Assembly: GCF_963921235.1 (NCBI RefSeq)
Contig: NC_086106.1
Location: 22,320,001 to 22,384,000, forward strand
Length of the DNA stretch: 64,000 nt
Direction of reading: 5' to 3'
Source: Mobula hypostoma
Lineage: Eukaryota
This document shows, one piece after another, positions 3,522-63,099 of the stretch. The stretch's first letter is position 1, and each line of letters begins with the position of its first letter. The position numbers and the translations under genes were made by a program. The notes beneath the pieces were generated by a model. The model saw only the letters and a list, made by a program, of their open reading frames with translations. It had not been told where the DNA came from and ran no database searches.

Positions 3522-5209
3522 GTTTACGAGATAGAAATGAAGGATGGAAATGTACATAGGGGGTAGACTTATAACCAGAAGGCAGTTCTCGAAATCTGAG
3601 GGGAAGCATAGAATCGAGGACTAGGGAAACTCTCTCCCGTCTCACCAAAATAGAAGACAGATTTATATTACGATTTCCTCGCTTATATTGGATTCGGAGC
3701 ACAGACACTGGACTTTGACTCCAAGTGTCCCTGTTTGTTAACAAAACTAACTCCATGCCGTCTATATTAATTATATTTTCGTTTTCCATTGTAAATTTAC
3801 GTTCAGTCGCTTTTTCCTGTGAACTATGCCTGGGATTCCCTCCCTGACAGTCACTACTTTCGTGTTTCTTTTCGAAGACTGTGGCGTAGCCTCGTTTTCC
3901 ATGATTGCGCCTGATCTTACGACAGAAGTATGACGTTCTATAACACTGAAGTGCAGCTACTGTGCAATTATGGCTACTGACATTGCTTTATGCTACATCC
4001 TGTATCTTCGAGATCAGGAAGTATATCTGCAGAATTTATACAATACTTTGCTCTAATCCACGCCACTTGTTTTTTTTCTGATAGTCTTTCTGCTATTTAT
4101 CGGTTAAAAAAATCCATTCTGCTGCTTTGTCAATCGGTTTCCACTGAATACATTCTGTGTCATGTACCCACAGTGGAATGGCAATGCAACAGATGCTCAC
4201 TGGAGGCTGCATTTGCCCGGTTGTCTAATGTGATGGGAGACGTAGTATCCTCGAATATTTACTAAATGCATTACGATATTTCCTATTCGATGGTAAGAAG
4301 CTCGATTCTCTCAACACATGTAATATTGGCAAAATCTGTTCCTTTTTAACTCTTCCACTTTAATCCTACAATGCTGCAACTTAACAGATAATTTACTTAT
4401 CAACACGGAGTGTAAAGATGGATAATTTATTACATTTAATTGTACGATTCCGTACGTCTAGCTCCTAGGAATTGTGACCTGTTCCACCTAAATCTGGCTT
4501 GCGATCGATAAACATTCTAAAGTACATGTTTTTTTTTCACGATACTTTGTCTTGTTTCTCTTATTAAATAGAGAGACAAAGGTACGACGTAACTGCAGCT
4601 CTGCCTTGCGGAATGTAACTCTATTTCCTTTTGTCCTCCATGTTATTACGAGAATTTTGTTTTACCAAAATTGACAGATTGCGTGATCTAGGATAGCTAT
4701 TGAACGGTTTTCATATGTTTCTACATTTCCAGTGGATATTCTCGTTCCTTCAAAATTGGGAAGACTTGCGTGCAGGTTATAACATTTTCAACTGAAAGCT
4801 CACTGTATATCTACAGGGGAGAGCCAGTAGTGATGGTATGGAGGGTAGAGATGGATTCGTTGAGGTTTTTTTTTCTTGCATTAGAATAGTTGATTGCCTT
4901 AGTATAGCACCTTCCGCAGATAGAAGGCTGAACTAAAAGCGCTCTAATCCGAATTGGAAACTGTAGGTGTAAAGAGCTTGAGATCCAATCATCTCAATTA
5001 TCATATGAAGATATATTTATTTATGTATTTTATTTTTTTTTCCAAATTGCGTGAGGCGCCTGACAATCAGGCACCAGAAAATTACCACATGTCCCGGCCG
5101 AAATGTTAAGCTTTCTCTGATCTCTATTTCATTACACGTATCAAATTCGGGGCATAAATACAGTGACATAATTCCATGTGTCATTGTCCCACTTCAAAGC
5201 AAAAAAAAG

Positions 5210-6303: not shown

Positions 6304-6605
6304 AAACAGCAGGAATTCTGCAGATGCTGGAAATTAAAGCAACACATCAAAATTGCTGGTGAACGCAGCAGGCCAAGCAGCATCTCTAGGAAGAGCTACA
6401 GTCGACGTTTCAGGCCGAGACCCTTCGTCAGGACTAACTGAAGGAAGAGTTAGTAAGAGATTTGAAAGTGGGAGGGGGAGGGGAGATTCAAAATGATAGG
6501 AGAAGACAACAAGGGGAGGGATGGAGCCAAGAGCTGGACAGGTGATTGGCAAAGGGGATCTGAGAGGATCATGGGACAGGAGGTCCAGGGAGAAATTATG
6601 CACCA
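6304..6605 (-). mobile_element. Penelope-like element terminal-repeat fragment
   Basis: Starts aacagcaggaattctgcagatgctgg...gcagcatct...gacgtttcaggccgagacccttcgtcagga. This is the reverse complement of the tail that follows the GIY-YIG remnant at ~57.0-57.3 kb. Related fragments at ~7240-7560, 13060-13140, 35880-36200 and 42310-42550. Confidence 0.6.
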
Positions 6606-6659
6606 TGACAGCTCCATATGGCCTTTGAAAATAGAGGTTCGGAATAAACATCTATTCCA

Positions 6660-7100
6660 TAAGCCTATTCCTTCTAAACAGTTGTCATAGTGCATTAATG
6701 CGACGTCGCCATTGGTGTGCAAAGGAGATAGAACAACTTCGTTCTGTTCGATTTTCATCGAACATTTGTCTTTCCTGGCGATTCCTTCTCTTCTCTGCAG
6801 TCCGTGTTTCATAATCTCTTCCCGAACGTTCACAGTTTCTGTGCATCTAAGCAGCAGCCTGTGGCGGTAAACCAGTGTTGAAGTATGCACGCGAATTGAT
6901 GTCTGATAAAGAACATCCGGCGCTGACAATACCTTCTTGTAGATAAAGTATCGTGCAGAGAGGTGGGAATCTGAAAAATGCCTCAGAACCAGAGGTTGCC
7001 CTTACTGGAAGCAACACACGGGATAATTTATGTCTGTAGGCAAAGGTTCTTATTATTAACAGGATATATATCGTCTCCATGCATCCTGTTGACAGGTTTA
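6660..7100 (-). mobile_element. Possible CR1 ORF1 (SGNH esterase-like) remnant
   Basis: Minus-strand peptides PVCCFQ and EQNEVVLSPLHTNGD resemble the VCCLPGA and QPEVVVHIGTND motifs of CR1 ORF1. Confidence 0.35.
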
Positions 7101-7694
7101 TTCACGTTGGAATAGATTCTTATCGATCCGCTTGTTTCTCATGACCACTTCAGAAGGCAAAAGAAGCACCATATCATCATGCAGCCTCAGATCCCGAAGG
7201 TGAATATTGAGAGCAACAGACAACATGGTGGAGGTAAGACTCTCTCTAGGGAGACGATAAACAGTGAACGTTCAAGCTGAATCCTAACAGGGACTACAAA
7301 TAACAGGAAACATCCGGAATGACAAAGTCGGTTGCGGGGAGGAGTGGTTAAAGGAGTATAAGATGGGAGGGGAGGGAAGAAACGGACGTATGCGTGAATG
7401 GTGACGAAGTGGAAAGCTGGCTGGTGATAAGTGGAAAAGGTAAGGTGGAAAATAAATGTAAAGCAGTTTGACAGGAGAGTGGAGTAGAATATGGCACAAT
7501 CAGCATGAGGAAGGTACCGGATGAACATGATAGACAGGGAAGGATAAAATAATATATAAGAAGTAAATCAGCATGGGGAATGAAAAAAAAACAATCAGAA
7601 ATAGAATCAGATTTATTATCACCGGCATGTGACATGAACGTCCTTAACTTAGCAGCAGCTGTTCAATGCCACACATAATCCAGTAGAAAGAGAA

Positions 7695-12316: not shown

Positions 12317-12800
12317 ATGAATGTCTTACTCATCTCATGTTCTGTATCTAAACTACTGTCCACGTTGTGTGAATATTTAATGATAATAATCATTGCTTTC
12401 TCTGGTGAGTGCATTTTTTAGAATAATTCTCTGCACAGCTTTGGTTCAATTCCAAACTCCTCGATGTTTCTGTCTTCTTTCTTACTTTTAAAGGAGCATT
12501 CGGCGATGATTCAGTATCTCAGTATCCGCCTGAACCTACAGTTGAAGAAGGTTGGACTGTAACTCTTAACTGCAATTACACTGCAGCATACGCTGGAGAT
12601 ACTGCCATCTGGTACGTTCAGTCTTCCAGAAGAGTGCCGAGATATATGGTAAAGATTTTGCCTAACGGGTCCCCAGCCCGGTCACTGCATTTCACAGAAA
12701 AGTTTTCTGCTGCTTATCAGAAAATAAATATGACAGTTCCTTTAACCATCTCCGGGTTCCTGGTGTCGGACTCTGCCTTGTATCTCTGCGCTATGAGGCC
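12317..12800 (+). CDS. TRAV: TCR alpha/delta-type V segment (V-b), open reading frame; exons 12317-12404 and 12494-12800
   Basis: Donor GTGAGT at 12405 and acceptor AG at 12492-12493 (phase 1). V exon reads GAFGDDSVSQYPPEPTVEEGWTVTLNCNYTAAYAGDTAIWYVQSSRRVPRYMVKILPNGSPARSLHFTEKFSAAYQKINMTVPLTISGFLVSDSALYLCAMRP, with Cys, Trp and D-x-A-x-Y-x-C intact and no stops. The start is uncertain: the ATG used by paralogues is ACG here (12362), and an in-frame ATG lies at 12317. Alpha versus delta usage cannot be resolved from V alone. Confidence 0.88.
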
Positions 12801-12838
12801 CACATTGCTGTAGAGAAGTGGCTTCTTAAACAAGTACC
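12801..12838 (+). other. RSS of V-b (22-bp spacer)
   Basis: Heptamer CACATTG at 12801-12807, 22-nt spacer, nonamer ACAAGTACC at 12830-12838 (2 mismatches to ACAAAAACC). Confidence 0.75.
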
Positions 12839-38067: not shown

Positions 38068-41000
38068 CTCACTGCAGCAGTTCGAGCGAGTGCTCTTGAG
38101 ATGGCGCCTTCAACAATGTGAGAATAAGAACAAATTAAGTTGACGGCAATTTTCAGGAAATCCATTGCAGACCAACTCTTCAGTAAATTTGACCAGTCGC
38201 TGTTTTTTTTTTCCCCGGAATGTGTGTTGGCGTTCGCCGTTCAATCTGTAAAGACTTTGAGATTCAATTTAATGCTATTAACAACAATATTATAGCTGCA
38301 AGAGCTTAGCTTTCAAAATACTGTTATACTTCCTGTTTCTCACTTGTACTTGTAGGGTGATCGACCTTCCTACGCGCTGTCATTATTTTCAAAGCGGGGC
38401 AGATAACGTTCCTTTATTTTTATCAAAGACTGTTTTTTGCTTCGTACGGCAAGATCAGCAGATCAACATACGGGGAACTGAATTTGAAATTCTAATTTCC
38501 CAAGCATTGCACCCTTATTTTCCCTCTTCATCGGGTATCTGTGCAGGAAATAATTTATTAATTAAGCGCAACTTCCAGTTGTGTCTACTTGCGTATAAAA
38601 ATTCCTTTCGTTATGTTCCAATGGGGTTTATACACTCATTTGCATCTGCCTGCTTTTGCTGGGGGACCTCATTTTTTTTTTCCAGAATCTCACAAACTCT
38701 TCCATGTTTATTGCCTAACTGATAAATGGAAGCCCTCTGTCCTTCATCATTTGTTCCCCGAACTCAGTGAATCGATGTAAAGGATTGTCGTATAAAAAAT
38801 ATTCTGTTTGTATATTGTTGGTATAAATACGGATGTGAATATGGTACGAATACAGAGTCGCGTATTTGGATGTCTTTGCACTGCTTTAAAAAAAAACTGT
38901 GAGTGAATAAATGAATTTTATTGGAGCAGTGTTGGCTGGCATATCGCATCGGACGCTGTTTGCACCGAGTTCCAAGTGTTTCCTTGAGACCGAATCAGTT
39001 TCAATAATACAGATATTTGAAATCAAGAACGAGTGCCGTCTCTGAGAAAGTCAAATGTCTGCGCTTTTAGATCGGACCTATGAATTAATTATTTAAATAT
39101 GCTATAGTTGTAAGTTCTCAATAATATCTTCCCAGAAGTAGGAAACTCATAGCAAACAGACGGCGGTGTAATCTGTTCTACCATACAATTTGCTGTCCAC
39201 CTTCTCGTCGGCTTCCCCTCTAGTAGTCTGCCGGTATCTTCTAATCAGGGACGATGCACTTTGTTTATCCAATCAGGTCTGGTATCATTGTTCTATACTC
39301 ACTCGTCAATGCAGCGCCTTTTGCTTCCGTATCCAGCTCCACGTTCTTTGTAGACGTCACATATATTCATATGATTTAGTCTGATATGGTTTTCGCTTCA
39401 GATTCTGAGATACTCTCTTCGAAATGCTCTCTATCTCGTTAGAGAATAAACAGTCTTAGTGCTGCTGCTCACAATGACTTCACAATCTGTCATATTGGTG
39501 ACGATATTGCGCCATTTCTCAGTTCAGGTGTTTCAAAATTCTGAAAAATATGCCGCAAAAGTCACATTCTCAGTATCGAGTCTGATTAGTACTGTCATGA
39601 CTTTATATGTTGAAAACAAAATCAACTCAGTCTGCTTTGACCAATATGTAAATAAATTCGGAGATAGAATTTATACGTTAAAGTGTTAAGTTTCATGGCG
39701 TTACGATATGCATTTAGCTCTTAATCGCACAAAAAAAAACAGACTAAGCCATCCATCCGAATTCATTTCAAATTATTAGAGGCAAGAGGCAATCTGAGAG
39801 ACCCTGAAATTTCCTAATTTTATCTTACCACACGACGACCCCTGGCCACCCAGTCTAGGAACCTAACACGCATTGCCAGGAAAGAATCTGAATAAATCAT
39901 TCACCATTAGCTGTCTTTAAACGCTTTACAGTTATGCTTTTTCATATTTGTGACATCAGACCTGGTATAAATCACTTTGGTTGTCCACTCTCCCTATGCT
40001 TACTATCATATTGAACCGTTCAATTCAAACACCTGTGACCCCTATTGTCTCCAAGGAAAAGATGCCGAGCTCGCCCAGCGTTTTCTTAAACGAGATGTAT
40101 TCTATTCCGAATATCAGACTGTTAAGACCCCTCTATATCCGTACTAAAGCTCCCATATCCTTCCTATCGAGATGCGACAAGAAATGGACACATTCTTACA
40201 ACACAAAGTTTGGTTTAAATACAATTTTACACAGCTGCAATATTACCTTATATTGTTCAGTTTCCCAACTAATGAGAGCCAAGACTCTATGGGATTCTAT
40301 GCATTTTATCAAACTTGCCATGCAGCCTTAAGGAGTCTATAAATGTTAAGCCCAAGGTTTCTCTGATCCTCAGCAGTTGATATTTTGCGAAAGAACCTCG
40401 TATTTTGCATCTCATATGGACATAACATGACAATTTTTTTCGCAGCTGCGCATTCCCTCAAAATCCCTCCACACCCTACGGCTAGAGTCTAAGTAGATCT
40501 TTGCATAGTACCTTATTTCCAACGTACCTTCTTAATCTATGCAATCTGTAAAGTTCCTTACGCTCTTTCCCAATTCCCCAGTAAGGCTATTATTAAAATC
40601 GTAAGCAGAAGTTTAGGATAGAACATATACCGACGGGGTACTTCTCATCAGACATCTCCATACGGATGCCTTCCAGTTACTAACAGTATATACCTTCCGT
40701 ATTACGATTTCAAGTAGTCAATTTTCCCTGCACATCATAAATTCCAAATCAGCGTACATGAGGATTTTTGACAAATACCTACGTGTTCTCGTGCAGTGTG
40801 TTGAAACTGTGACTAAACACCAAGTTAAACCCAAGCCAATGCAGATAGAGTAGTCCTAAGGCTAATCATTCAGTCTTCACTCTTCCACTTTAACATCGCA
40901 TGGTGAAAACTGTTGATAAAATAATACAAACATATACATTGTCCGTTTCATTCTTGAAACCACATTTGCATCGTAAGTACTTGTAAAAGTAAAACTATAA

Positions 41001-44000
41001 TAAACTGTATTACATAGGAGTCTCATTAAAGGTACAACATATAGGCCGAATCACTTCAGCATTTATGCAATGTATTGTCCATCAACGGTTCTAGGTAGAT
41101 TCTCAAAATTTTTTCCACTAGTGGGCATAGGTTTGAAAACAGTCGCTTTCGTCGCCTGCACCTTGCACCCTCTGGACGACACTGCTCTACAGACAAATTG
41201 GTGTTTCTGTCATTGAAATTGCTTCTAGCGGATATGTTGGGTGATTATCAAATTGGTGACAATTTCGTGACCAGAATCGACAACAAACCAGTCACTTATA
41301 TCCTGGTCTCGGAGGAATTCGATATCACAGTCCATAGTTTATTGGCGACGTTATTTGCCAGTAATATCAGTTTGAACTACCGGCTAGGAAGCCGGGACTT
41401 TGATACGGAGCCGTTCTACTGACGTTCCCATGAAGTGCCGGGAATAGCAAGGCTGGGGTCGGATGGAGCTGTGCATCATTTGTGAGCTTCTTGTTACGGC
41501 ATTCCACAAGCTTTCTGCAACTAGAACGTCCTGAATTGGAAATAGTTGCTTGCACTCAGCCCTGAAAAAAGTTGCAGCGAAGTGACCCTTCTACAGGTAC
41601 CATTTCGTCTGCTCTTGTGTAAAGGGATATAGCCCAGGTTAAAAAGTCGAAACACTCTACCATACCTCTACTGCTAAGAGCATGGAACAGACTCGATTAG
41701 TGAATCTCGGTTCTATAGAGGGTCACGGCTCTTCCAGACAAGTCCGAGCGTTCCTATATGGCTTTATCTGGGTTGTTTTGAAGTCACTTCATGCTGTTTA
41801 GTAATCATAGAGAAACATACCTGCGGGGACTGGGATCTTTCCTGCGGATCCCAGCTTTTTATGTGGCCATGTAGCCATGAGACAGAATGGAGTATTTTCA
41901 ATTTTCTCTTTGTATTTTCTCTGCCGTAATAGGCAGACATTGATTTCGTGTTACGGAGAATGTTTCAAGAGCACTGAATACTTTGCAATTGTTTTAGGTA
42001 TTTCCATTTACAAGGGTAAATTGGACAATACATTATCATGATTATGGACTCTAGTTTGTTTTATGATCGGTAATGAGGGTAAACGTATTCCCATATAAGC
42101 ACTAGTTATTTTTTTATGTTATACGTTTCTCAAGGCCGCTCTCCCCATCTGTGCCAATCTTTGCTGCCATACGAGATCGTCATGTAATGCCCATGTTGCT
42201 TTCATTCCATCACGCATCATTTGTGATATGACTGCACGTAGAAAGAAAGTAATCACAGGCAAGATTGATAGAACAAAATGTTACGTAGTGTTAGCCTGCA
42301 GTGAGGGTCTCTCCACATTTATTTCAGAAAAAGTGACAGCAAGGGCTTTGAAAGTGGGAGGGGGAGGAGAGACCCTAAATGATAGGAGAAGACGGGTAAA
42401 ACGTGGATATGAAGCCAACGGCTGGGAAGTTGATTGGCAGAGGTCTACAAGGATGAAGAAGAGGGAGTATCATGGGAAGCAAGGCCTTAGAAGTAAGAAA
42501 GAAAGAGGGAGGAGAGCACCAGAGGAAGATGGAGAACAGGCAAGGAAATATTGTTAGAGGGAATAATTTGTTTGTAAGCATTTTCTAGTTAAAGTTAAAG
42601 TTTGGTAACGACGTTACAGTTTAACAAAAGGTAAAATGCATTGTTTATGGTATATTGCGGCATATGATGATGTCTCAGTAGGTTTCGCCGCGTCCTTCGT
42701 GTAACTTCCAATTCGGAGAAGGACAAAAGTTGGGGTCCCATGCGTGTAACATGAACGTGAAAAGCTCCATGTCTACCCGCAAAGAAACATTATAGAAACA
42801 ACGCCGTAAATTCATATGACAGTAGACATGTTGAAGTAAAAAAATATTAATGCGGATTCTGTTAAGGGAAACGATGGTTGATGAGGTTTATTACTTGTGC
42901 CATTGTGAGCATTGGTAGAAAACTTGTGGTGCAGTCTTCCTAAAACCATTGATGGTCAATACACTGCATAAATGCTTAAGCAGATTCTGGCTAAAAGTTG
43001 TACCTTTGATGAGACTCATTTTTAATTCAGATTGATAGAGTTTTATTTTTACAATATTTACGATGCAAACGTGTTCTGAAAAAATGAAGCAGGCACTGAA
43101 TATGTTTGTATTATTTTATTAGCAGTATTCACCATACGATGTTAATGTGGAACAGTGAACAGTAAATGGTTAACCTGACGACGACTCTGTCTTCATTGGC
43201 TCCGGTTTAACTTGGTGTTTAATCAGAGTTTCAACTCACTGCACAAGAACATTAAAGTGAAAAGAATGAATCATTAGATGTTTCGACAAATGGTACGATG
43301 ACTTTGTGATCAAGCACCAAGTCGTTTGCATCCAGCGCCAAGTGCAGTAGGACGTCGGCAAGTGTGGCTGCCCTTATAACACCTAAAGCAGAAGCCGTCA
43401 AGTGCTAGCGTCGTAGGCTAAGCAAGAGGCTAAACTGAAAATGGAAAAGGCTGCCAGAGAAGCGGAAAATTAGTTGGAAGAGCACGGATAGATATAGAGT
43501 TAGAAGTGCTGTTGCTACAACGAGATGCTGATGCAGCCGCAGTGGAAGCACAAGTGTCGGAAAATGCTGAAGAAATGCACTTTCAGCATGAAACACTAAC
43601 ATCGATATCAGAAAGAGCCAAATCGGAACGCACCAGGGAATATTTCTAATCTCACATTGACCTGCAGGTTCATTCTCGTTCTCCATACCTGCCTGTTGCC
43701 GTTCTATCTCATGTGAAATCACGGGGCAGCTTCGTTGCATCGCGTCCACCTGGGGAAGACAACTCACAACTGAAAACTTGCAACACACTTAGATATGAGA
43801 GGGCTGACTATAGATACTCCCCGACACCAAACTTAACAGATCCGGCGAGAGCTGAGACAAAGGCTGAGGTCAGAGCATCAAATGCGATCATGAACGTACA
43901 TGCTCACTCACATGTCCCCAGCATATTCCCCCAGCTAGCACGCCACCAGCAGCAGAACCCTTGATACAGTATTTAGCGCAACGAGACCTCGCCAATTCAG

Positions 44001-44874
44001 GACTGTACCATCCTGACAACAAGCCTGAAAATTACAGTGCATGGTACTCATCATTCACCAGAGCAGCCGGCGGAATCCAGCTGACAGCAACCCATGAGTT
44101 GGACCTTATGACTAAATGGCTGGGAAATAAATCAAATGAACAGGTGAAACGCATACGCTCATGTACGTCAACAACACCAATCTATCTTTACAGAAACCAT
44201 GGTTGGAGACTTCGGGACTGCTAAGCGGCCCCTGCTATTATTGAGAAGCCGCTATTTCAATGGCTGGACATTTTTTTCTGGGGTGTCAGCCAATGACCAC
44301 ACGGAATTACGAAAATTCGGAGATTCACTCATGGAGATTGAAGGTGCTAAAGAAGACGGCTATTTAATTGGTCTGCCGTATCTGGATACTTCACGCGGAA
44401 TTGGAGCAATTGTGGACAAACTTCTATTTTGGCTGCTGGAAAGTTGGGTGTCTATTGGCTCAGGATACAAGGAAGAGAACGGTCATCCATTCTTTCCCTT
44501 TGTGTACTTATTAGGTTTGTGTGCAAAGAGGAGAAGGAGCAAAACGACCCTAGCTTCATGAATCAAGGTAGCTCCACAACTCAATTGAAGCCAGTCAAAT
44601 CATTTTGAACAATTTTAACATCAATAACCCGTATCAGTACACAAAATCGAAGTCGCCACAACCAATGATGACCCTAGCAAAAATTGTCCATTGCACAACA
44701 AACCCCACCCCCTCAGAAATGCTGAATGTTTAAAAACAAACCCGTTGACGAAAGAAATTCCCTTTGTCAAGGAAAAAAGAATATGTTTTAAGTGCTGTTC
44801 CTCTATCTCCAACATCGCGCGTTGTGAGCATTTCTACTTGTGCGATGGTGTGTCGGCATCGCTGGGCAATTCGG

Positions 44875-45270
44875 GTACGACGCGCATGCGCACACACCTG
44901 CCCGCGCAAGGCTTCATGGTCATAGTAGTCCATATGGGAAACAAGAAGTGGCGTCATTTTTAGTAAAAGCGAAATGTGTCCTCCGTAATTTCGGAGGCTT
45001 GTAAAGCTTTATTGAGGCATTGCAACCAAATTTGCTTCCCTGCCCTTCTGCCGCCCAATGAGAAGCTATTGCAGCGTAGGATGAAATACAATGCTACCCA
45101 GCGGACCAATCACAGTTCTTAGACGGTCTGCTTTGTCGCGACGAGCGGTTAATTTTGTGTTTTGCGTTGCTGCATCGCCGACTCAGGCGTAGGGTTGCGC
45201 GTCGGTTTTGCGTACGTTTTGCGGCGACGCAGACCTCCGACGACGCCTTGACGCAGAAGAATAAACAAGG
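44875..45270. mobile_element. Non-autonomous repeat inserted in the BEL coding region
   Basis: Interrupts the BEL frame after the zinc knuckle. Shares gcccgcgcaaggcttcatggtcat with the MITE at ~19799-19822 and ends ...gacgcagaagaataaacaagg. Confidence 0.45.
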
Positions 45271-46678
45271 TTTTTAAGGAGTGTATGTTCTCCGTGAAGT
45301 ACTCGGAATGCAACAGCTTATATCACAATGGGGCCATACATCCAGACCCATCACCGCAAAATGCCAAAGCACATTCACTGTCTCAACAGAACGGCGGGGA
45401 GGGAGAGGATCACTCCAACCTAACTACTGTCAGCTCAAGCTGCAGAGAAGTTTGCGGTCCAGGTCCGTCCAGCCGTTCGTGCTAAAAAAATCTGCCGCAC
45501 TCAGGTATAACCTAAGGGAGCCAAAGAAAAGGCCATCGAAGCCTATGTAAATCTGGACGACAAGAAAAACCACTCACTGGTCAGAACAGAGTTGTTCGAG
45601 TTCTTCGGCGTAGAGAGTAATCCTTTCCCATGCTACCTTAGGACTTGCTCTGGCATTGCAGAAACGTATGGCAGGAAGGCAGAAGGCTTCCAGCTCGAGT
45701 CGCTGAATGACAAAGTTGTCATCTGTCTCCATCCACTCTTAAAGTGCAAGGAGATCTTGAATAACCGATCCGAGATTCGGACGCCAAGCGCAGTGCTACA
45801 CCAGCCCAATGTCTACCACATTGCCAAGGACATCCCATAACAGGATCCAATAGCAGAAATACTCCTGCTACTCGGAAGAGACGTTCTTAGGATGCACAAA
45901 GTCAGGCATCAGGCCAATGGACCACACAACGACCACTTCGACCAACGCCTGGATCTGAGCTGGGTGCTGATAGGGGAGGTGTGCCTTGGCAACGTACACA
46001 AACCGACCGATAACACGCTCAAGACGAACGTGCTACAGAGTGGCCGCCATTCATGTTTTCAGCCCTGCACAAGCGTCATGTGTGTCAAGGAAGCACAACG
46101 AAAGCACAAGCATAGTAAAGTGACTGAGAACACACTGAGACAGGCAGTCTTCACTCAAACTGAGCACGACAATGACTTGCTCCATCTGTAGAAGACGTCA
46201 TCTTTTTAAAAAAGTAATGGAACTAAGGTCTTCAGAGACGAAGCAAACAATTGGGTCGTCCCACTACTGTTCAGCGGTGAACGCTGGCGCTTACAAAGCA
46301 ACAAAGAGCAGGCAGTCATGAAGGCCTTTCCACCCGATGACAGTGCTCCAGCGATCAAGGACATAGATTTAGGTGGAGACACTATACATACACAAATGAG
46401 TTTGGGTCACCTTTGGGAGATCAGGACCGATACATTCATGTTCTCCGTGCCGTCAACCAACAAACCATTCAACCGCCGTGGAGTTCTGTCCACTGTCAAC
46501 ATTATTTTATATCCTCTGGATCTACTGGCACCGTTTACGATCCAGAGAAGAGACCTTCTCAGAGAACGTTCCTCCGAGAACTCCGACCGGGACTCTCCGC
46601 GACCAGAAAGACAAACTAAGCAGTTGGGAAGTTTGGAGAAATTCACTTCAAGAACTAAGACAGCTTCATGTCAAACAT

Positions 46679-47629
46679 GGTGTTCCCCGCTCTCATAAAC
46701 GAAGCAATAGAAACCTGGATTGGTCTTGATAATAAAGAACCCGCACAATACTTTGAGAACCTTGTATCCAGTTTAAAGGGAATTGGTGAAATTGTCCATA
46801 TTTACCTGATTGGAAAAGAAGGCAATCAGACACTCCCACGGGTAGTCTCTTTGCACTGTGCTGATGATGCAATCAGTGTCAGTGGGCAAAATCAATTGCG
46901 CCAGCTTTCAGCAAAATCAACTGCTGCTTGCCAGCATGGAACTGACCTGACTGTTGTAGGTGGCCACATCCCACGAAGCATGTGGAGGTGCAACATGGAG
47001 ACAATGATCTGGAAACAATGCACGTCACTGCCAAGAGATCGTCTTCATCCGTCCCAAGTGAAGATAGCATTTATTCATTGGATGGAAAACTGTTCCGTAT
47101 ACATATTCTAGTGCTGTCATTATTATGTGGTCTGTAATAATATGTAGGTTGAAACAAGCAAACTGGAGACTGCAGTGTGTCGGGCTTCTGGCCTTAACCT
47201 TAATGAAACTATCTATCTAATGGATGAGGAAGAGAATGACCTGGAGTACTTTACCAAACCATCTTGTCTCATTCGGTGTTTTGACACACGTTCCAGGACA
47301 TGCCAGTTAAAGCCCAATCTTCTCCCTTTTACAGGCCGTATGCATGCTATTATTCACAAGGACCTGTTTTTATAGTAGCTGAGGGAGATTCTCTGATATG
47401 TTACAATCCGCTGCTTGACAGTTTCACCGGACTGCGCTTCCCAGAGTTTTGGAGTCCTGTGCCCTCCTTGTGTAAGATTGCCAGCTGCAATGGGTGTATT
47501 TCTGTTTGCAGAGATAAGTGTAAAAGGGGTAATTTCAGAACATTAAAACGGAACCCAGCCACATGAGTAGTATGAGTGATAAGTGGAATGGAGATATTGC
47601 TGACAGATTGGCAATTTGTTTTGGCGTGA
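46679..47629 (+). pseudogene. KBTBD4: KBTBD4 (kelch repeat and BTB domain containing 4) 3'-fragment retrocopy, degraded
   Basis: Peptides across frames match vertebrate KBTBD4 as remembered: GVPRSH..EAIETWI..SLKGIGEIVHIYLIGKE..VSLHCADDAISVSGQN..TAACQHG.DL.VVGGHIPRSMWRCN..LPRDRL; EDSIYSLDGK; ETSKLETAV; ENDLEYFTKPSCLIRCFDT; LPFTGRMHA..HKDL; VAEGDSLICYNPLLDSFT; KIASCNG; ending LLTDWQFVLA-TGA (47627-47629). Multiple frameshifts and stops; BTB/BACK N-terminus absent. Confidence 0.9.
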
Positions 47630-48449
47630 TTCTAATCAAGTACAGTAAACTGCAGTTATTTTTTTGTCGGATTTAATTTGTTGCGTGCACAAAACAGTTT
47701 TTTAACTTCTGCAGATAACAACAAAATTTCAGTCCGATGTATATTCTCTCAGATATTAATTGACCTAAACAATGTCCAACTATTGTCATGTTGTATTCCA
47801 GACGGAGACCAGTTGCAGAGGTCGTTCTAATTCTACATAAATATTGATCTAGAGACTAACGTTTAACACCAAGTTCATAGTGACATCACAATGGTCAGGT
47901 CGGGAGTGTGTTCCCTTAAGGCATTCATTTAACTTTACTAAATCTCTGCTTTAAATAATTCGCTTATAACTGTTTTGTAGTTGTAGTTAAAGGATGATAA
48001 CTACGTTACAGTTTGACAAAAGATTAAAAAAAAATCATTGTCTATGGTACATCGCGGCATGTGATGACATCACCTCCGGTTTCGCTGCGTCTTGTGATTA
48101 ACTTCCAGTTGGCAGAAAGAGAAAGGGTGGGGTCACGCGTGTGCAGCATGAACGTGAAAAGCTCCATGTCTACCCACAAAGAAACATTACAGAGGCAACG
48201 ACATAAGTTCTGGTGACGGTAGACATGTTGAAGTAAGTTTATTAACGCTGCTCTGTTAAAGGCTCAGAACAGCTTAAATAAACTTGGCCAACTTCTACTG
48301 TTGTCCTCCTTCCTTTCGTCGCCAAGCAAGATAAACACAGAGAGGTTGATTCAAAGAGTGGCGTACTTTGCCGTCGTCCTTCATGAGCCTCCAGGTGTAT
48401 CCTCAAAAGCTAAGGTACGTGATTAGCATACTCGCAGTCTTGGCCATGG

Positions 48450-51400
48450 CCATGTTTGACAGCTTCTATCTTGGACGGATCCGTATCTACTCAGTCTCGT
48501 GAGTGCCCAAAGTAGTTGACACGCATTTGCAGAACAGGGCACTTGTTCAGTTACAGTTTTAACCATTCCGCTTTCAAGCGGCCTCATATCTTCACTAGCC
48601 TCGGCTTGCACACATTCTGATTGGGAACGGACAATATGTGATCAACCAGGTACATCAGTTCATGTGTCCACATTCTTCTCCAAGATGCGTGGAATCGAGG
48701 CTGGTCCACCTGAAATGTCCTGGGGCATTCTTTGAAATTGGAAGATTGCAATTTCATATACAAATATCGTTTTCTGTTTGTGAACTTCACCCATGGATAT
48801 ATGATAATACTCACTCCTTAGATACAGCACAAGGAGCAATTTCGCCCCCAGGGGTAGGCCATCGAATCCTCAATGCGGAATAGTATACTGATCGGTTCAA
48901 TAAGCGAAATTCAACACACAATGCGCACTGTCACGTGTCTCTTAGTCACAACAACCATGGAGGACAAATAGGAACTCCATGACTCAGTGATAATGCCAGC
49001 TTCCTTCTGTTTCAGCAGATGCTGCCGAACATCCACCACCTATGCTTTCTCTGAGAATGATCCCCTCTGTCACTTGGATGCTGCGGGGTGTACACTTGAA
49101 ACAACGCACATCAACCCCTCTGTAGAAAAGACATTTTCGAAATTTAACATTTATCCATCCATCTCTTTTTCCAATCGTCAGGTATCGGGGAAGCACTAAA
49201 TTTGAATAACTTGCCTGTCAATGTCTCTGTTCCAAAAAATTGTCCCCTCCTGGTTTTCTTAAATAAACACACGGCGTTACAGCTACAGGGGAAAAAAAAG
49301 TGACAACAAGGAGGGCCTCGATATCAGGCCTTCTGGGGAATTTCGGATATCTCGTCACTTCGTCATTCTAACTACATTCCCAGGCCAAAATACGAAAGTT
49401 TTGTGCGATGTGTACAACTAATTTTCTAATTTCCGCTGATCTTCCTGCCAAAGATGGTTTTGCAATTTCTTAAAATATTTCTGCACTCCGGGTTGATAGC
49501 CAAGCTTTTAAGTAAACGTTCTCCAACTTTCTTCTTGCAAAGTCCAATTGGCCTCCTCACAATAGGAGTATCTGCTCCTAGAAGAAATGAAGCTTCACCC
49601 TACTCAATCGAAAGCCGGTCAGTCTAACATTAAATATCAAGTGGCTCAGCTACTCCAATACGTGCCTCGAAATCTGCAGCTTCAACGACAAAAAACTATC
49701 ATACTGGTAGACATAACCACAAAGGCCCAAAATCTCCAGTGTACCAGGTGACGTCAATGATAGGTGTTTTGAAATATCTGTTGCAGAATGATCTACACGG
49801 TAAAATAAAGTGAGTGCCTACTTCAAGTGTGGGTCTAGCAAAACATCGTTCAATCTGTCGCGATACGCTGGAGTTTGGACAACTACACCTTCAGAAAAAG
49901 GGTTTCGCACAGTGCAATGCTGCTTGATACGTTGATTGCAGCGTCCACACCCCCCGCTACAACCCGCGAGACACCGGGACGTTCCCTTAGTTGGTCTCTC
50001 CATGGTGTCCTGCTTTGACCTTCTGTTTAAGCGACCGTTGATTGAGATTCTGAACTTTTTTCCGTACGTTGCATTATCATTTGAAATGTCGATTCTCATC
50101 ATAGTTACACAGACAATACCGACCGTTCCCCGTTTCAAAGGGACAGTTCAGTAGCAGCCGTCTGCTTAGTACGTCCAAACAGCTGGATCGGCTCCCTGTC
50201 GGCTTTCACACGCTTGATGGTAGGACCTGCCGATATCATCCGGGATACATCGGCTGTATAATATTTCACGAAATCCTGTGAAACTTCTATTGCGTGACAA
50301 CAGGGGTCTGTTCCGCAACAAAGGCCACTACCGAGGAATGTGCCCTGCTGACGGAGGCCTCCTGCTCCTTCAGCACGTTTATCCATTTCTTACCTAGCTG
50401 ATCAGTTCAAGAAACGTGGAGGGGGCGCATCCTCCGGTAAATAGAGTCGCTTAATGAGTCATATAACTTGCCTGGGCGCCCTTTCGCCATTCAGCCAAAT
50501 GAAAGTCTCCTTTCAGCCTCAAGCAAAGCAGCTGTCTGTCTAGTGGGAAAAGTGTAGTCAGAATGCTAAAACAAAAAAAGCAAATATCCGATATAAGCTT
50601 CATTGCACTTCCCGTCGTGGCGAAAACGCTTTCTAGCGCTTGCAAGTTGCACGTAGAAGTGGGGAATTATTTGTCCTTCTTCAATAAGCTTACTATTTCA
50701 GCAGCCAGACCCTTCAGACTCTCTGCCAGTCGCTGTATTTTCACATTATCGGAGCACTGCCACTAATCCAGTATGTTAGATGTCTACTCCGCCGAAGCCA
50801 CATATTTTCTCCTATCCCTCGCGGTTCATCTCAGATCCAAGAAAATACTAAGCCTACGCTAAACTCGACTCTCTGCTCGCGGACTTTGCCATTATCCACC
50901 GAGAGCGCAATTGCCGATACAAATCAGATGTTTTTAACCGACGCAGAAGCACTTACTGGACAACATGTCCAGTTCACTCGGCAGAAACGAGAGTTAAAAC
51001 CTCCCCATCACCTACGAGTGTCTCAACTTCCAGTTCTGCACCCTTGCCGACACTCTCCGATTCACTGATGACCTCTCCTCTCCCGGAACCCCAAGTACAA
51101 CATGCAGATCCACTCCCTCTATGTCATTGTTAGTCTGAACTAAACCAACATCTTTGCCCGCTGTTGGTCCTAGCTGCCATTCTCTGATTGTTACTTCCGG
51201 AATAATGGAACGGAACTTAACACTCTCATCAGTACTTCATCTGATGATACCCATTCTGTTCCTCACAGCAGCCTTATTTTCGTGTAATCCCTTTTAAGTC
51301 GCACCAATACTTGATCGCTGGGGCATACATTACCATATACTGTAATCACTTATTAAGTTCCAGGCGAGTCCCCCGAATGACAACAGTTTGTGATCATTGT

Positions 51401-54716: not shown

Positions 54717-55735
54717 ATAGAAACATAGAAACATAGAAACATAGAAAATAGGTGCAGGAGTAGGCCATTCGGCCCTTCGAGCCTGCAACACCATTTATTA
54801 TGATTTTGGCTGATCATCCAACTCAGAACCCAGCCTTCCCTCCATACCCCATGATCCCTGTAGCCACAATGGCCATATCTAACTCCCTCAAAACATAGCC
54901 AATGAACTGGCCTCAACAGTTTGCTGTGGCAGAGAATTCCACAGATTCACCACTCTCTGTGTGAAGAAGTTTTTCCTAATCTCGGTCCTAAAAGGCTTCC
55001 CCTCTATCCTCAAACTGTGACCCCTCGTTCTGGACTTCCCCAACATCGGGAACAATCTTCCCGCATCTAGCCTGTCCAATCCCTTTATGATCTTATACGT
55101 TTCAATCAGATCCCCCCCTCAATCTTCTAAATTCCAACGAGTACAAGCCCAGTTCATTCAGTCTTTCTTCATATGAAAGACCTGCCAACCCAGGAATCAA
55201 TCTGGTGAACCTTCTTTGTACTCCCTCTATGGCAAAGATGTCTTTCCTCAGATTAGGGGACCAAAACTGCACACAATACTCCAGGTGTGGTCTCACCTAG
55301 GCCTTGTACAACTGCAGTAGTACCTCCCTGCTCCTGTACTCGAATCCTCTTGCTATAAATGCCAGCATACCGTTCGCCTTTTTCACCGCCTGCTGTACGT
55401 GCATGCCCACTTTCAATGACTGGTGTATAATGACACCCAGGTCTCGTTGCACCTCTCCTTTTCCTAATCGGCCACCATTCAGATAATAATCTGTTTTCCT
55501 ATTTTTGCCACCAAAGTGGATAGCTTCACATTTATCCACATTAAATTGCATTTGCCATGAGTTTGCCCACTCACCCAACCTATCCAAGTCACCCTGCATC
55601 CTCTTAGCATCCTCCTCACTGCTAACACTGCCACCCAGCTTCGTGTCATCGGCAAACTTGGAGATGCTGCATTTAATTCCCTCATCCAAGTCATTAATAT
55701 ATATTGTAAACAACTGGGGTCCCAGCACTGAGCCT
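54717..55735 (-). mobile_element. Young 5'-truncated CR1 LINE
   Basis: Nearly intact RT C-terminus ([41 protein letters not shown]) with one nonsense codon and one frameshift. Tandem (AACATAGA)n 3' tail at ~54717-54748. Confidence 0.92.
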
Positions 55736-55737
55736 AG

Positions 55738-55793
<56 letters not shown>
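55736..55793. repeat. (GATA)n microsatellite
   Basis: Perfect tagatagata run abutting the CR1 5' end. Confidence 0.95.
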
Positions 55794-56034
55794 GGTTAGG
55801 TAGACAGACAGATAGATAAAGATAGAAGAGACAGAGAAGCCAGAGCACGTAATGGCAGAGGATTGCACTCAAACAACAGCAGCTGTGAGATCCTAGCCAA
55901 TTGCAAACAAGGAACACGTCTCTGTAGAACAAAAACTAACACGGACCCTGATCTTTGGCAATACTGCTTACGATGGAAGCATAAGCACGGGACATTTATT
56001 CACGTCTTTCAGTTTTATTACGAAAGTTGTAGTA

Positions 56035-56466
56035 ATGTTGCGTATCTGTCTATTTGATATAATTCTGTTCCCGGTGAGTCTCTGTTCCACTGCTAGTTGT
56101 GGGTTTGATTGTTTGATTCACTGACAGTTTTTTCACAATCTTTGTCATGTGTCCCAGAAACGTTTGGTGATGATAGAAACTCCCAGTATCTGCCTCAGTT
56201 AATGGTCGAAAAAGGACAAAACTTAACATTGACATGCACTTACCCTGAAACATATGATGGTTATAATGCCTTCTGGTACATCAGATATCCCGGAAAATCT
56301 CCAAAATGTATACTGTGGAGTTTCAGCAGCTGGTCCGTAGACCGGTCAGCACTTGTTTCGAAGGTGTTTTCGTTTTTTTTTATCAGAGAGAAAATAAGCG
56401 GCTAGATTTAACTATCTCTGGTGTTCTTATCTCTGACTATGCTTTCTATCTCTGCGCAATGACTAT
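56035..56466 (+). pseudogene. TCR alpha/delta-type V pseudogene (V-d), close paralogue of V-c
   Basis: The leader exon 56035-56073 is 39 nt (phase 0) but the acceptor at 56156-56157 needs phase 1. The V exon (ETFGDDRNSQYLPQLMVEKGQNLTLTCTYPETYDGYNAFWYIRYPGKSPK...) has a +2 frameshift in a T run at ~56363-56371, then resumes YQRENKRLDLTISGVLISDYAFYLCAMT. Confidence 0.88.
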
Positions 56467-56505
56467 CACTGCGCATCACAGAAGCAGTGAATCTGTTCAA
56501 AGACT
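56467..56505 (+). other. Degenerate 23-RSS of V-d
   Basis: CACTGCG, 23-nt spacer, TCAAAGACT. Confidence 0.75.
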
Positions 56506-56679
56506 CTCACTGCAGCAGTTCGAGCTAGCGGTCTCCAGACGGCGTCACCAGCAATCGGAGATTGCTAGCACATTCGTGTCATGATGGCATTCCTCAGCAA
56601 ATCGATTGCATACCTGCTCTACAGTAAAAATATGATCCATCGCTTCTCTTAACGGGGTTTACACGCTCAATTGCAGCTG

Positions 56680-61317: not shown

Positions 61318-63020
61318 TAGAACCATAGAAGCATAGAAACTGCAGCACGGAAACAGGCCTTTTGACCCTTCTTGGCTGTGCCGATCCATTTTCTGCCTAG
61401 TCCGACTGACCTGCACACGGGCCATATCCCCCCATATTCCTCCCATCCTTAAATCTGTCCAATTCATTCCTAAATGTTAAAAAAGAATCCACATTTACCA
61501 CCTCATCTGACAGCTCATTCCATACTCCCACCACTCTCTGTGTGAAGAAGCCCCTCCTAATGTTCCCTTTAAACTTTTACCCCCTCACCCTTAACCCATG
61601 TCCTCTGTTTTTTTTTTCTCCCCTAGCCTCAGTGGAAAAAGCCTGCCTGCATTCACTCTATCTATACCCATCATAATTTTATATACCTCTATCAAATATC
61701 CCCTCATTCTTCTACACTCCAGGGAATAAAGTCCTAACCTATTCAACATTTCTCTGTAGCGGATTTTCTCAAGCCCTGGTAACATCCTTGTAAACCACCT
61801 CTGCACTCTTTCAACCTTATTTATATCCTTCCTGTAATTTGGTGACCAAAACTGAAAACAATACTCAAGATTAGGCCTCACCAATGCCTTACACAACCTC
61901 GTCATAACATTCCAGCTCTTATACTCGATACATTGATTAATAAAGGTCAATGTACCAAAAGCTCTGTTTACGACCCTATCTGCGTGTGACGCCGCGTTTC
62001 GGGAATTTGGTATCTGTATTCCCAGATCCCTCTGTTCTACTGCACTCCTCAGTGCCCTACCATTAACCCTGTATGTTCTACCTTGGTTTGTCCTTCCAAC
62101 GTGCAATACCTCACACGTGTCTGTATTAAACTCTATCTGCCATTTTTCAGCCCATTATTCCAGTTGGTCCAAGTCCCCCTGCAGGCTCTGAAAACCTTCC
62201 TCACTGTCTACTACACCCCCAATCTTTGTATCATCAGCAAATTTGCTGATCCAATTTACCACATTATTATCCAGATCATTGATATAGATGACAAATAACA
62301 ATGGACCCAGCACTGACACCTGTGGCACACCACTAGTTACAGGCCTCCACTCAGAGAAGCAATGCTCTACTCCCACTATTTGGCTTCTTCCATTGAGCCA
62401 ATGTCTAATCCAATTTACCACCTCTCCATGTATACCTAGCGACTGAATTTCCTATCTAACCTCCCACGCGGGAACTTGTCAATGGCCTTACTGAAGTCCA
62501 TGCAGACAATATCCACTGCCTTCCCTTCATTCACTTTCCTGGTAACCTCCTCGAAAAACTCCAATAGATTGGTCAAACATGACCTACCATGCACAAAGCC
62601 ATGTTGACTCTCCCTAATAAGTCCCTGTCTATACGAATGCTTGTAGATTCTATCTCTTAGTACTCCCTCCAATAACTTACCTACTACCGACGTTAAACTT
62701 ACTGGCCTATAATTTGCCGGATCACTTTTCGATCCTTTTTTAAACAACTTAACATCATGAGCCACTCTCCAAACCTCCGTCACCTCACCCGTAGACAGCG
62801 ACATTTTAAATATATCTGCCAGAGCTCCGGCAATTTCAACACTAGTCTCCTTCAAGGTCCGAGGGAACACCCTGTCAGGTCCCGTGGATTTATCCGCTTT
62901 AATTTTCCTCAAGACAGCAAGCACCTCCTCCTTTTCAATCTGTTCACTTTCTATGATCTCACTAATTGATTCCCTTAATTCCATAGACTTCATGCCAGTT
63001 TCCTTGGTAAATACAGACGC
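61318..63020 (-). mobile_element. 5'-truncated CR1 LINE (relatively young)
   Basis: [49 protein letters not shown] and VRPNLEYCFQFWSP. 3' tail tagaaccatagaagcatagaaac. Confidence 0.92.
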
Positions 63021-63099
63021 AAGTTCGGAACTATATATAGGGCGTGATTCACCTGAATCCGCAGGGGAGCAATATTCTTGAGGGAAGATTTACTGGAGC

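Follow-up and report, generated by a model that had tools for sequence, protein, structure and literature searches.

Architecture of the element

The window (the whole stretch analysed, 64,000 nucleotides of Mobula hypostoma; all positions below are numbered within it) contains, in the setting of a TCR V array, an LTR-bounded stretch in which BEL/Pao-like sequence lies on either side of a piece of KBTBD4. The earlier note had read this stretch as a BEL/Pao-KBTBD4 chimera, and the LTR pair, the KBTBD4 homology and the BEL-like sequence on both sides bear that reading out. The features, in order, are as follows.

42562-42868, + strand: 5' LTR, detectable part (direct repeat with 47954-48262; multi-copy depth)
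42935-43251, strand not assigned: nested, unrelated interspersed repeat within the leader (self-blast, depth)
43400-44880, + strand: degenerate gag-like region (translations, motifs by eye)
44883-45117, strand not assigned: nested repeat of very high copy number (depth >50000)
45511-46188, + strand: protease-like region with one stop and with LDSGS-like and LIGxD...GW motifs, both decayed
46210-46676, + strand: post-protease linker joined to the N-terminal part of a Pao Peptidase_A17 region (Pfam, Atlas)
46677-46783, + strand: KBTBD4 middle coding exon (aligns to 3869-3975 of the zebra shark locus L001, 6558-6662 of L002 and 6882-6989 of L003)
46784-47629, + strand: KBTBD4 last coding exon to its natural stop, joined to the preceding exon without an intron
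47630-47809, + strand: truncated KBTBD4 3'UTR, 180 nt, without poly(A) (sawfish and skate UTR alignment)
47810-47953, + strand: BEL-like 3' end, made up of a short putative pol C-terminal tail (RPVAEVVLIL), then untranslated sequence and, ahead of the LTR, a weak purine-rich tract (sequence)
47954-48262, + strand: 3' LTR, detectable part (direct repeat with 42562-42868; multi-copy depth)

The two LTRs (42562-42868 and 47954-48262) are 78.6% identical, with a K2P distance of 0.256. The 5' LTR adjoins an unrelated high-copy repeat whose end coincides with 42562, and loose ends lie beside it at 42496 and 42562; depth over the 3' LTR is about 3260 in the bin 48022-48220 and 37 further on. The initial 45 nt or so of the right LTR are not present in the left one, and a search for them upstream of the left LTR gave no match. 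A TGTT-starting LTR had been proposed from 47909 and an element end at 48337. Neither is supported by repeat similarity or family depth, the repeat being detectable from 47954 to near 48262. No target site duplication (TSD) of the whole element was recognised, there being no matching short repeat beside 42562 and 48262 (at 21% divergence the exact LTR ends are uncertain), and canonical TG..CA LTR ends were not found either. From the LTR pair we infer a probable single insertion event. Two repeats are nested within the element. That in the leader region has an inverted copy at 40784-41099 (82% alike by self-blast) and a depth of about 8800 in the bin 43047-43245, and the very high-copy repeat shows loose ends, in each of the four runs, at 44883, 44930 and 45117.

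The gag-like region, whose family depth is in the hundreds, holds two decayed Cys/His knuckles (about 44680-44835) in a reading frame broken across several frames. The gag knuckles and the protease were recognised by motif, those of gag by eye; Pfam returned no match in the gag-like or protease-like regions (Atlas gave a weak lead from the latter to DUF1758/Asp_protease_2). In the next segment Pfam placed PF05380 (Peptidase_A17) at 46474-46653 below threshold (E 0.009; 16.4 bits, with the cut-off at 22.3), and the three Atlas clusters nearest to the query 46210-46695 were all PF05380, at 0.86-0.88; a related RNA contig matches 46299-46608 at about 84%. Over ten pieces Pfam gave two weak matches only, and nothing useful for a frame-1 piece spanning the 5' junction. 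Rfam had no match over 40500-49000, and tblastx of the BEL parts found no BEL relatives in the rest of the window or in three KBTBD4 loci. Family depth falls at about 46430, so the A17 piece may belong to another BEL lineage, or a rarer one, than the sequence from gag to protease.

The M. hypostoma copy has neither an RNase H nor an integrase domain (translations, Pfam), in keeping with the earlier proposal that host sequence replaces them. The reverse-transcriptase domain is missing as well, at a separate point upstream of the KBTBD4 insert (about 46300-46320), which leaves no reverse transcriptase by which to classify the element. Beyond the insert, family depth rises again from about 47823, and one contig joint resumes at 47805. 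On these two signs we infer both the BEL family identity of this 3' end and the short integrase tail at 47806-47847.

The KBTBD4 insert

The insert was compared with the KBTBD4 genes of zebra shark (L001), sawfish and skate (L002 and L003). Positions 46677-47657 align at 78-84% to the shark, sawfish and skate exons, and the KBTBD4 part matches solved human KBTBD4 chains with E values of 1e-36, 4e-22 and 2e-24. The zebra shark coding exons lie at 2001-2604, 3869-3975 and 6418-7275 of its locus; the middle one is 107 nt long, and the insert begins at its first base (46677, correcting an earlier estimate of 46679) and runs to the natural KBTBD4 stop codon at 47627-47629. The earlier note had placed an intron near SLK|EIG in tetrapod KBTBD4, and all three cartilaginous-fish genes indeed split the same two exons with an intron of 1-5.7 kb. 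In the insert this site is uninterrupted, 46783|46784 being an exon-exon junction without its intron, and since the intron is missing, the KBTBD4 piece was derived from spliced RNA. No first-exon KBTBD4 sequence was found anywhere in the window.

On the 3' side, the UTR alignment extends to 47809 against sawfish and to 47773 against skate, which lengthens the UTR segment from the roughly 165 bp first estimated to 180 nt. The mRNA contig of the species itself (3202 nt) matches the window only at 46673-47656 and again from 47698 over 79 nt or more (as far as about 47776), leaving about 684 nt unmatched at its 5' side and about 1400 nt at its 3' side, so that the mRNA continues some 1.4 kb past the breakpoint. 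The absence of poly(A) noted earlier holds: no A-run follows 47809 in the sequence 47780-47830. Nor was a LINE-type target duplication seen around the KBTBD4 part.

Of the shark protein, the insert represents only about residues 201-522, and its frame is broken by no fewer than five indels (at 46699, 47046, 47085, 47119 and 47365). It is a fragment and a pseudogene, and not a BTB-BACK-Kelch gene copy with an intact frame. Mismatch to the parental mRNA is about 11%, and since this is half of the divergence between the LTRs, the capture is approximately as old as the insertion. The parental mRNA was the only source of high-identity RNA contigs over the KBTBD4 part (contigs cannot prove absence). 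This non-functional C-terminal fragment, as it appears to be, bears no sign of selection, and nothing in it points to function.

Copies of the chimera in other rays

Contigs of the source species (organism A) and of a second species (organism B) run across both junctions. The organism B contigs are about 94-95% identical across both junctions and past the right flank, and the chimera lies at the same locus in that species. A further BEL-KBTBD4 copy lies at a different locus in Hypanus sabinus, where it is annotated as "KBTBD4-like" (XP_059843726.1, P0005). This protein joins BEL protease residues to KBTBD4 (its residues 3-50 match window positions 46036-46179) and has the 1-nt deletion at 47119 in common with the window. 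The H. sabinus chimera is a deleted copy that sits inside a CARD/Death gene; among the window's open reading frames of at least 85 aa, no CARD or Death domain was noticed by eye. Since the same BEL-KBTBD4 fusion and the same frameshift recur at another locus, the chimera itself was copied, and the extra copies could in principle have come from segmental duplication. Related copies are present in at least two ray families.

Origin of the chimera

Taken as a whole, the element is very probably a decayed, non-autonomous LTR retrotransposon of BEL/Pao type that carries a KBTBD4 cDNA by way of LTR-mediated retroposition. As to how the cDNA was acquired, we tentatively favour capture of a spliced read-through transcript with a single 3' template switch, followed by non-autonomous spread in myliobatiform rays. 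A BEL copy located upstream within the KBTBD4 gene would have been transcribed in read-through, and a cryptic splice donor in pol would have been joined to the acceptor of the middle exon, giving a BEL-KBTBD4 chimeric RNA that retained packaging and priming signals. During reverse transcription next to a normal BEL RNA, the 3' LTR and the pol tail would have been copied first, the enzyme then switching at the GAGAC overlap (47805-47809) into the KBTBD4 3'UTR and continuing to the 5' end. In this manner the RNase H/integrase region would have given way to a cDNA of two KBTBD4 exons, spliced together, with 180 nt of 3'UTR, and the chimera may have spread for a few rounds with enzymes supplied by other elements before it decayed. 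The same route is proposed for retroviral oncogene capture, which in the model of Swain and Coffin reportedly proceeds through a read-through or spliced chimeric RNA and then 3' non-homologous recombination in reverse transcription.

The earlier note had invoked two template switches. LTR-mediated capture as such stands (the host piece is spliced, truncated at both ends and without poly(A), and it takes the place of pol sequence instead of interrupting it), while the second switch, at the 5' end, may have been splicing instead; we give splicing a slight preference at this junction, and hold a second switch to be quite plausible. In shark, sawfish and skate alike, homology on the 5' side sets in at the first base of the exon, and a start at exactly this base seems to point to splicing of a read-through transcript more than to template switching at random. 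Were both junctions made by template switching between co-packaged KBTBD4 mRNA and BEL RNA, a reading that we consider possible though not the likelier one, the exon-boundary position would be due to chance or to a preference for sites near junctions. A breakpoint placed at random in a 3.2-kb mRNA would lie no more than 4 nt from an internal exon junction in less than 1% of cases. The alignment of the conspecific mRNA, on the other hand, begins at 46673, 4 nt before the exon boundary, and the AAAC just before the junction resembles the AAAG at the end of the first exon. This likeness would instead suit template switching a few bases ahead of the exon junction, but just three of the four upstream bases match the first exon. 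A longer continuation of the first-exon end upstream of 46677 was rejected (about 12 of 19 bases match with three gaps, which is not significant). Template switching would also be in line with the GVP encoded at the 5' junction, since BEL pol carries a similar v-p-R motif near this point; a ATGGTGTTCC-like string in intact BEL copies at the position matching 46676 would indicate microhomology. At the 3' junction the overlap is at most 5 nt (GAGAC, 47805-47809) and is seen in a single contig joint, one side of which is 20 nt long. Among published retrocopies, microsimilarity was found at 86% of junctions, and in five BLASTOPIA cases the switch back took place "near an exon-exon junction" (PMC5131818), both of which speak for double switching. 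Capture by two switches is a variant of the spliced read-through account rather than a separate event.

The remaining alternatives dispense with capture during reverse transcription of the element. A LINE-made KBTBD4 processed pseudogene could have landed inside an older BEL copy and later lost its poly(A) together with neighbouring pol sequence. The 5' truncation is typical of such copies, other repeats are nested in the element, and sawfish has AATAAA-like signals 40-70 nt beyond the breakpoint, near which a short mRNA isoform could end. Against this, which we regard as very unlikely, both an A-run and a target duplication are absent at 47810, the flanking BEL parts are non-adjacent in pol with RNase H and integrase gone exactly at KBTBD4, the KBTBD4 part shares the orientation of the element, and its linkage to BEL is kept in the H. 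sabinus copy at another locus. That linkage at a second locus, the colinear order in one orientation throughout, and a divergence of the fragment from its parent that is half of the LTR divergence also weigh against two BEL copies of separate origin, or one together with a solo LTR, lying by chance around a KBTBD4 retrocopy; although the undetected TSD, the LTR identity of just 78.6% and the left LTR's lack of the first 45 nt or so seen at the right would suit such an arrangement, we find it very unlikely. Finally, a DNA-level duplication of part of the KBTBD4 gene or an assembly chimera has the repetitive context in its favour and nothing more. Both are contradicted by the tests run and are scarcely credible: the intron between the two exons is missing, and independent contigs from two species span both junctions.

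Metazoan cases of LTR-mediated retroposition are on record (Tan et al. 2016, Genome Res, PMC5131818), some of them due to BEL/Pao elements and some in vertebrates; examples are a mosquito retrocopy with BEL18_AG flanks and a Drosophila chimera that the Pao element BATUMI produced. As in those retrocopies, a partial, intron-less host mRNA here replaces an internal part of the ORF of an LTR element, has no poly(A) or LINE-type duplication, is flanked by LTRs on both sides, and was re-copied with its carrier as a non-autonomous element. It differs from them in its ray host, in being old (LTR K2P 0.26) and decayed with related copies in at least two ray families, and in a KBTBD4 5' edge that lies exactly at a splice acceptor. 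The same paper cites maize Bs1, rice LTR-embedded retrocopies and human HERV-K/FAM8A1 as LTR-carried host fragments; these likewise hold host gene fragments between the LTRs of non-autonomous elements, but involve other element superfamilies and hosts, and Bs1 holds pieces of several genes. The likeness to retroviral oncogene transduction extends to a 5' junction at a host exon acceptor, a 3' junction in the host 3'UTR with few shared bases, a host insert in sense orientation and the loss of pol sequence. Here, however, the carrier is a BEL/Pao retrotransposon and not an infectious retrovirus, the insert is non-functional, and the donor insertion in the KBTBD4 gene is deduced rather than observed. 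Like LINE processed pseudogenes, the KBTBD4 copy derives from a host mRNA, lacks introns, is truncated on the 5' side and decays as a pseudogene; it departs from them in its lack of poly(A), its truncated 3'UTR, the lack of a flanking duplication of its own, and its position between colinear parts of one LTR element.

This kind of capture is already known, and its occurrence in a cartilaginous fish is possibly the sole new point. The locus offers a clear and checkable case of LTR-mediated retroposition in this group, and its acceptor-precise 5' junction provides a concrete handle for separating a spliced chimeric transcript from a double template switch. If other LTR captures in the genome also prove acceptor-precise, splice-mediated capture by LTR elements would be a main RNA-based gene duplication route in rays. 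The H. sabinus copy also raises an issue of annotation, XP_059843726.1 being called protein-coding while its frame consists of BEL protease and a frameshifted Kelch fragment.

Anatomy of the element

The earlier note had described a BEL/Pao element with a KBTBD4 mRNA fragment, and we confirm this with slightly corrected coordinates. The decayed element consists of the following parts.

42562-42868 and 47954-48262, + strand: LTR pair, a direct repeat of about 307 nt (self-comparison)
knuckles near 44680-44835, + strand: decayed gag-like region with two degenerate Cys/His knuckles (translation)
45511-46188, + strand: protease-like region (translation; weak DUF1758 lead in ESM Atlas)
46210-46676, + strand: linker running straight into the start of a Pao Peptidase_A17 region (Pfam, sub-threshold; ESM Atlas)
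46677-47809, + strand: KBTBD4 sequence (alignment to KBTBD4 genes)
3' of the KBTBD4 part, + strand: 144-nt stretch resembling the end of BEL pol, then an untranslated tail (sequence reading)

The two LTR copies are 78.6% identical (K2P 0.256, pairwise alignment). Next to 42562 and 48262, where this divergence leaves the LTR ends approximate, no short repeat was seen that would match as a target-site duplication. The Peptidase_A17 part is the only part of the element with Pfam support, at an E value of 0.009 that is below threshold, and all three of its nearest ESM Atlas clusters carry PF05380. The sequence between the LTR copies contains neither a reverse-transcriptase nor an RNase H or integrase domain, which makes this copy non-autonomous. 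Within 46299-46430, family depth stands in the hundreds, and at about 46430 it sinks to that of the KBTBD4 sequence; one RNA-run contig links 46318 to 47805. It may be that the commonest version of this family carries neither the A17 piece nor KBTBD4, or that a rarer BEL lineage supplied the A17 piece.

Three pieces of the window match solved human KBTBD4 chains (E 1e-36, 4e-22 and 2e-24). The zebra shark gene (L001) has coding exons at 2001-2604, 3869-3975 and 6418-7275 with standard GT/AG borders, and window positions 46677-47657 align to exons two and three, joined; the same exons are separate in the sawfish (L002) and skate (L003) genes, where the introns measure about 5.7 kb and about 1 kb. 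The intron near SLK|EIG named in the earlier note is real in these cartilaginous-fish genes and is missing in the window, and the fragment therefore derives from spliced RNA. The coding part reaches its natural stop (47627-47629) and carries frame-breaking indels relative to the shark coding sequence at 46699, 47046, 47085, 47119 and 47365. Its protein identity is 66.6-66.8% to Mobula and Hemitrygon KBTBD4, versus 61-65% to shark or skate, a slight difference that agrees with a myliobatiform host.

Junctions and proposed route of capture

Against all three reference genes, KBTBD4 homology begins with the opening base of the middle exon, and no KBTBD4 first-exon sequence was found anywhere in the window. 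The alignment of the conspecific mRNA extends another 4 nt in the 5' direction, where the window has AAAC and the first exon of shark and skate ends in AAAG. On the 3' side, UTR homology to sawfish continues to 47809 and then ends, and a BEL-family joint restarts at 47805 (one contig), the shared bases being at most GAGAC; no A-run follows 47809 in the sequence, in agreement with the poly(A)-less end noted earlier. A 3202-nt contig from X10 (source species, probably RNA) represents the parental KBTBD4 mRNA and matches the window only at 46673-47656 (about 11% mismatches) and over at least 79 nt from 47698. Some 684 nt at its 5' end and about 1400 nt at its 3' end are unmatched, so that the captured piece was shortened at both ends. 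The fragment's divergence from this mRNA amounts to half of that between the two LTRs, which fits a capture and an insertion close together in time.

Since a random breakpoint would fall this near an internal exon junction in less than 1% of cases, we favour a route in which a chimeric read-through RNA would have been spliced from a BEL donor to the KBTBD4 acceptor, followed by a single template switch at the 3' side. This route is also the one put forward for the capture of oncogenes by retroviruses. Alternatively, the 5' junction may stem from another template switch close to the exon junction. A LINE-made KBTBD4 pseudogene that landed in a BEL element does not fit, because poly(A) is missing, pol is lost exactly where the insert sits and the BEL-KBTBD4 linkage recurs; nor does a retrocopy flanked by two unrelated BEL copies, whose parts would not be expected to be colinear with matching divergences, as they are here. 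The lack of the intron and the contigs of two species contradict a DNA duplication or a misassembly.

The reading of LTR-mediated retroposition is supported: as in the metazoan LTR-mediated retrocopies of Tan et al. 2016 (PMC5131818), the insert crosses an exon junction, takes the place of pol sequence instead of interrupting it and has no poly(A), and LTRs lie on both sides. Those cases include one from a mosquito, a retrocopy with BEL18_AG at its flanks, and a chimera produced by the Pao element BATUMI (PMC5131818). This kind of event is already known, and the window element is a further case; a text search of the literature found no paper on LTR-mediated retroposition in cartilaginous fish, and the VGP retrocopy survey is silent on mechanism. 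The main interest lies in the precision of the 5' junction to the acceptor and in the evidence for re-copying of the chimera.

Copies and age of the chimera

In the DNA run X1, from the source species, both junctions are spanned by contigs that show 0-2 differences. Contigs from X5 (organism B, a second species) cover 45963-46793, 46788-47305, 47281-47780 and 47751-48400 at 94-95% identity and extend beyond the right end of the element; the same insertion is present in organism B and is older than the split of the two species. A small run of a third species (X9, organism C) gave a 192-nt contig, 96% identical, within the Kelch part. Two to four more contigs of the source species differ in sequence over the Kelch and UTR part; the parental gene must account for one of them, so a few further copies exist.

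An exhaustive protein search found a "KBTBD4-like" protein of Hypanus sabinus (XP_059843726.1, assembly GCA_030144855.1), encoded by a single 1026-nt ORF within the span of a CARD/Death-domain gene. Its residues 1-50 correspond to window positions 46036-46179 in the BEL protease region and the remainder matches 46818-47689, part of the UTR included, with no equivalent of 46180-46817. It shares the out-of-frame stretch caused by a 1-nt deletion at 47119, and by this shared lesion the chimera was copied as a unit after decay had begun. No CARD or Death domain was seen among window ORFs of at least 85 aa (read by eye); given a CARD/Death gene in the stingray versus a TCR V array in the window, the stingray copy lies at another locus. 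The gene is annotated as protein-coding, but in its 341-aa ORF residues from the BEL protease region are followed by a Kelch fragment of KBTBD4 that is partly read out of frame. The gene model appears to be an annotation artefact, produced by a chimeric retroelement inside the CARD/Death-domain gene.

Nested repeats and the surrounding array

Unrelated high-copy repeats are nested inside the element at 42935-43251 and 44883-45117, and another (42496-42562) adjoins the left LTR. The very high-copy short repeats at 42496-42562, 43047-43245 and 44883-45117 reach summed contig depths of 8800 to >50000, have abrupt loose ends in each of the four runs, the likely RNA run included, and had no match in Rfam. 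The 317-nt repeat at 42935-43251, within the element leader, forms an inverted pair, 82% alike, with a copy 1.8 kb upstream (40784-41099).

The element was placed by the earlier note inside a TCR V array, and this is confirmed by TCR V-like exons ending in YLCAM on both sides of it, the last of them divided between two frames. LINE-type reverse-transcriptase ORF fragments flank the V array.

12427-12810, 37712-38035 and 56109-56581, + strand: TCR V-like exons with terminal YLCAM motif (ORF reading)
2517-2915 (+ strand), 55300-55935 (- strand) and 61594-63089 (- strand): LINE-type reverse-transcriptase ORF fragments with FADDT-type motif
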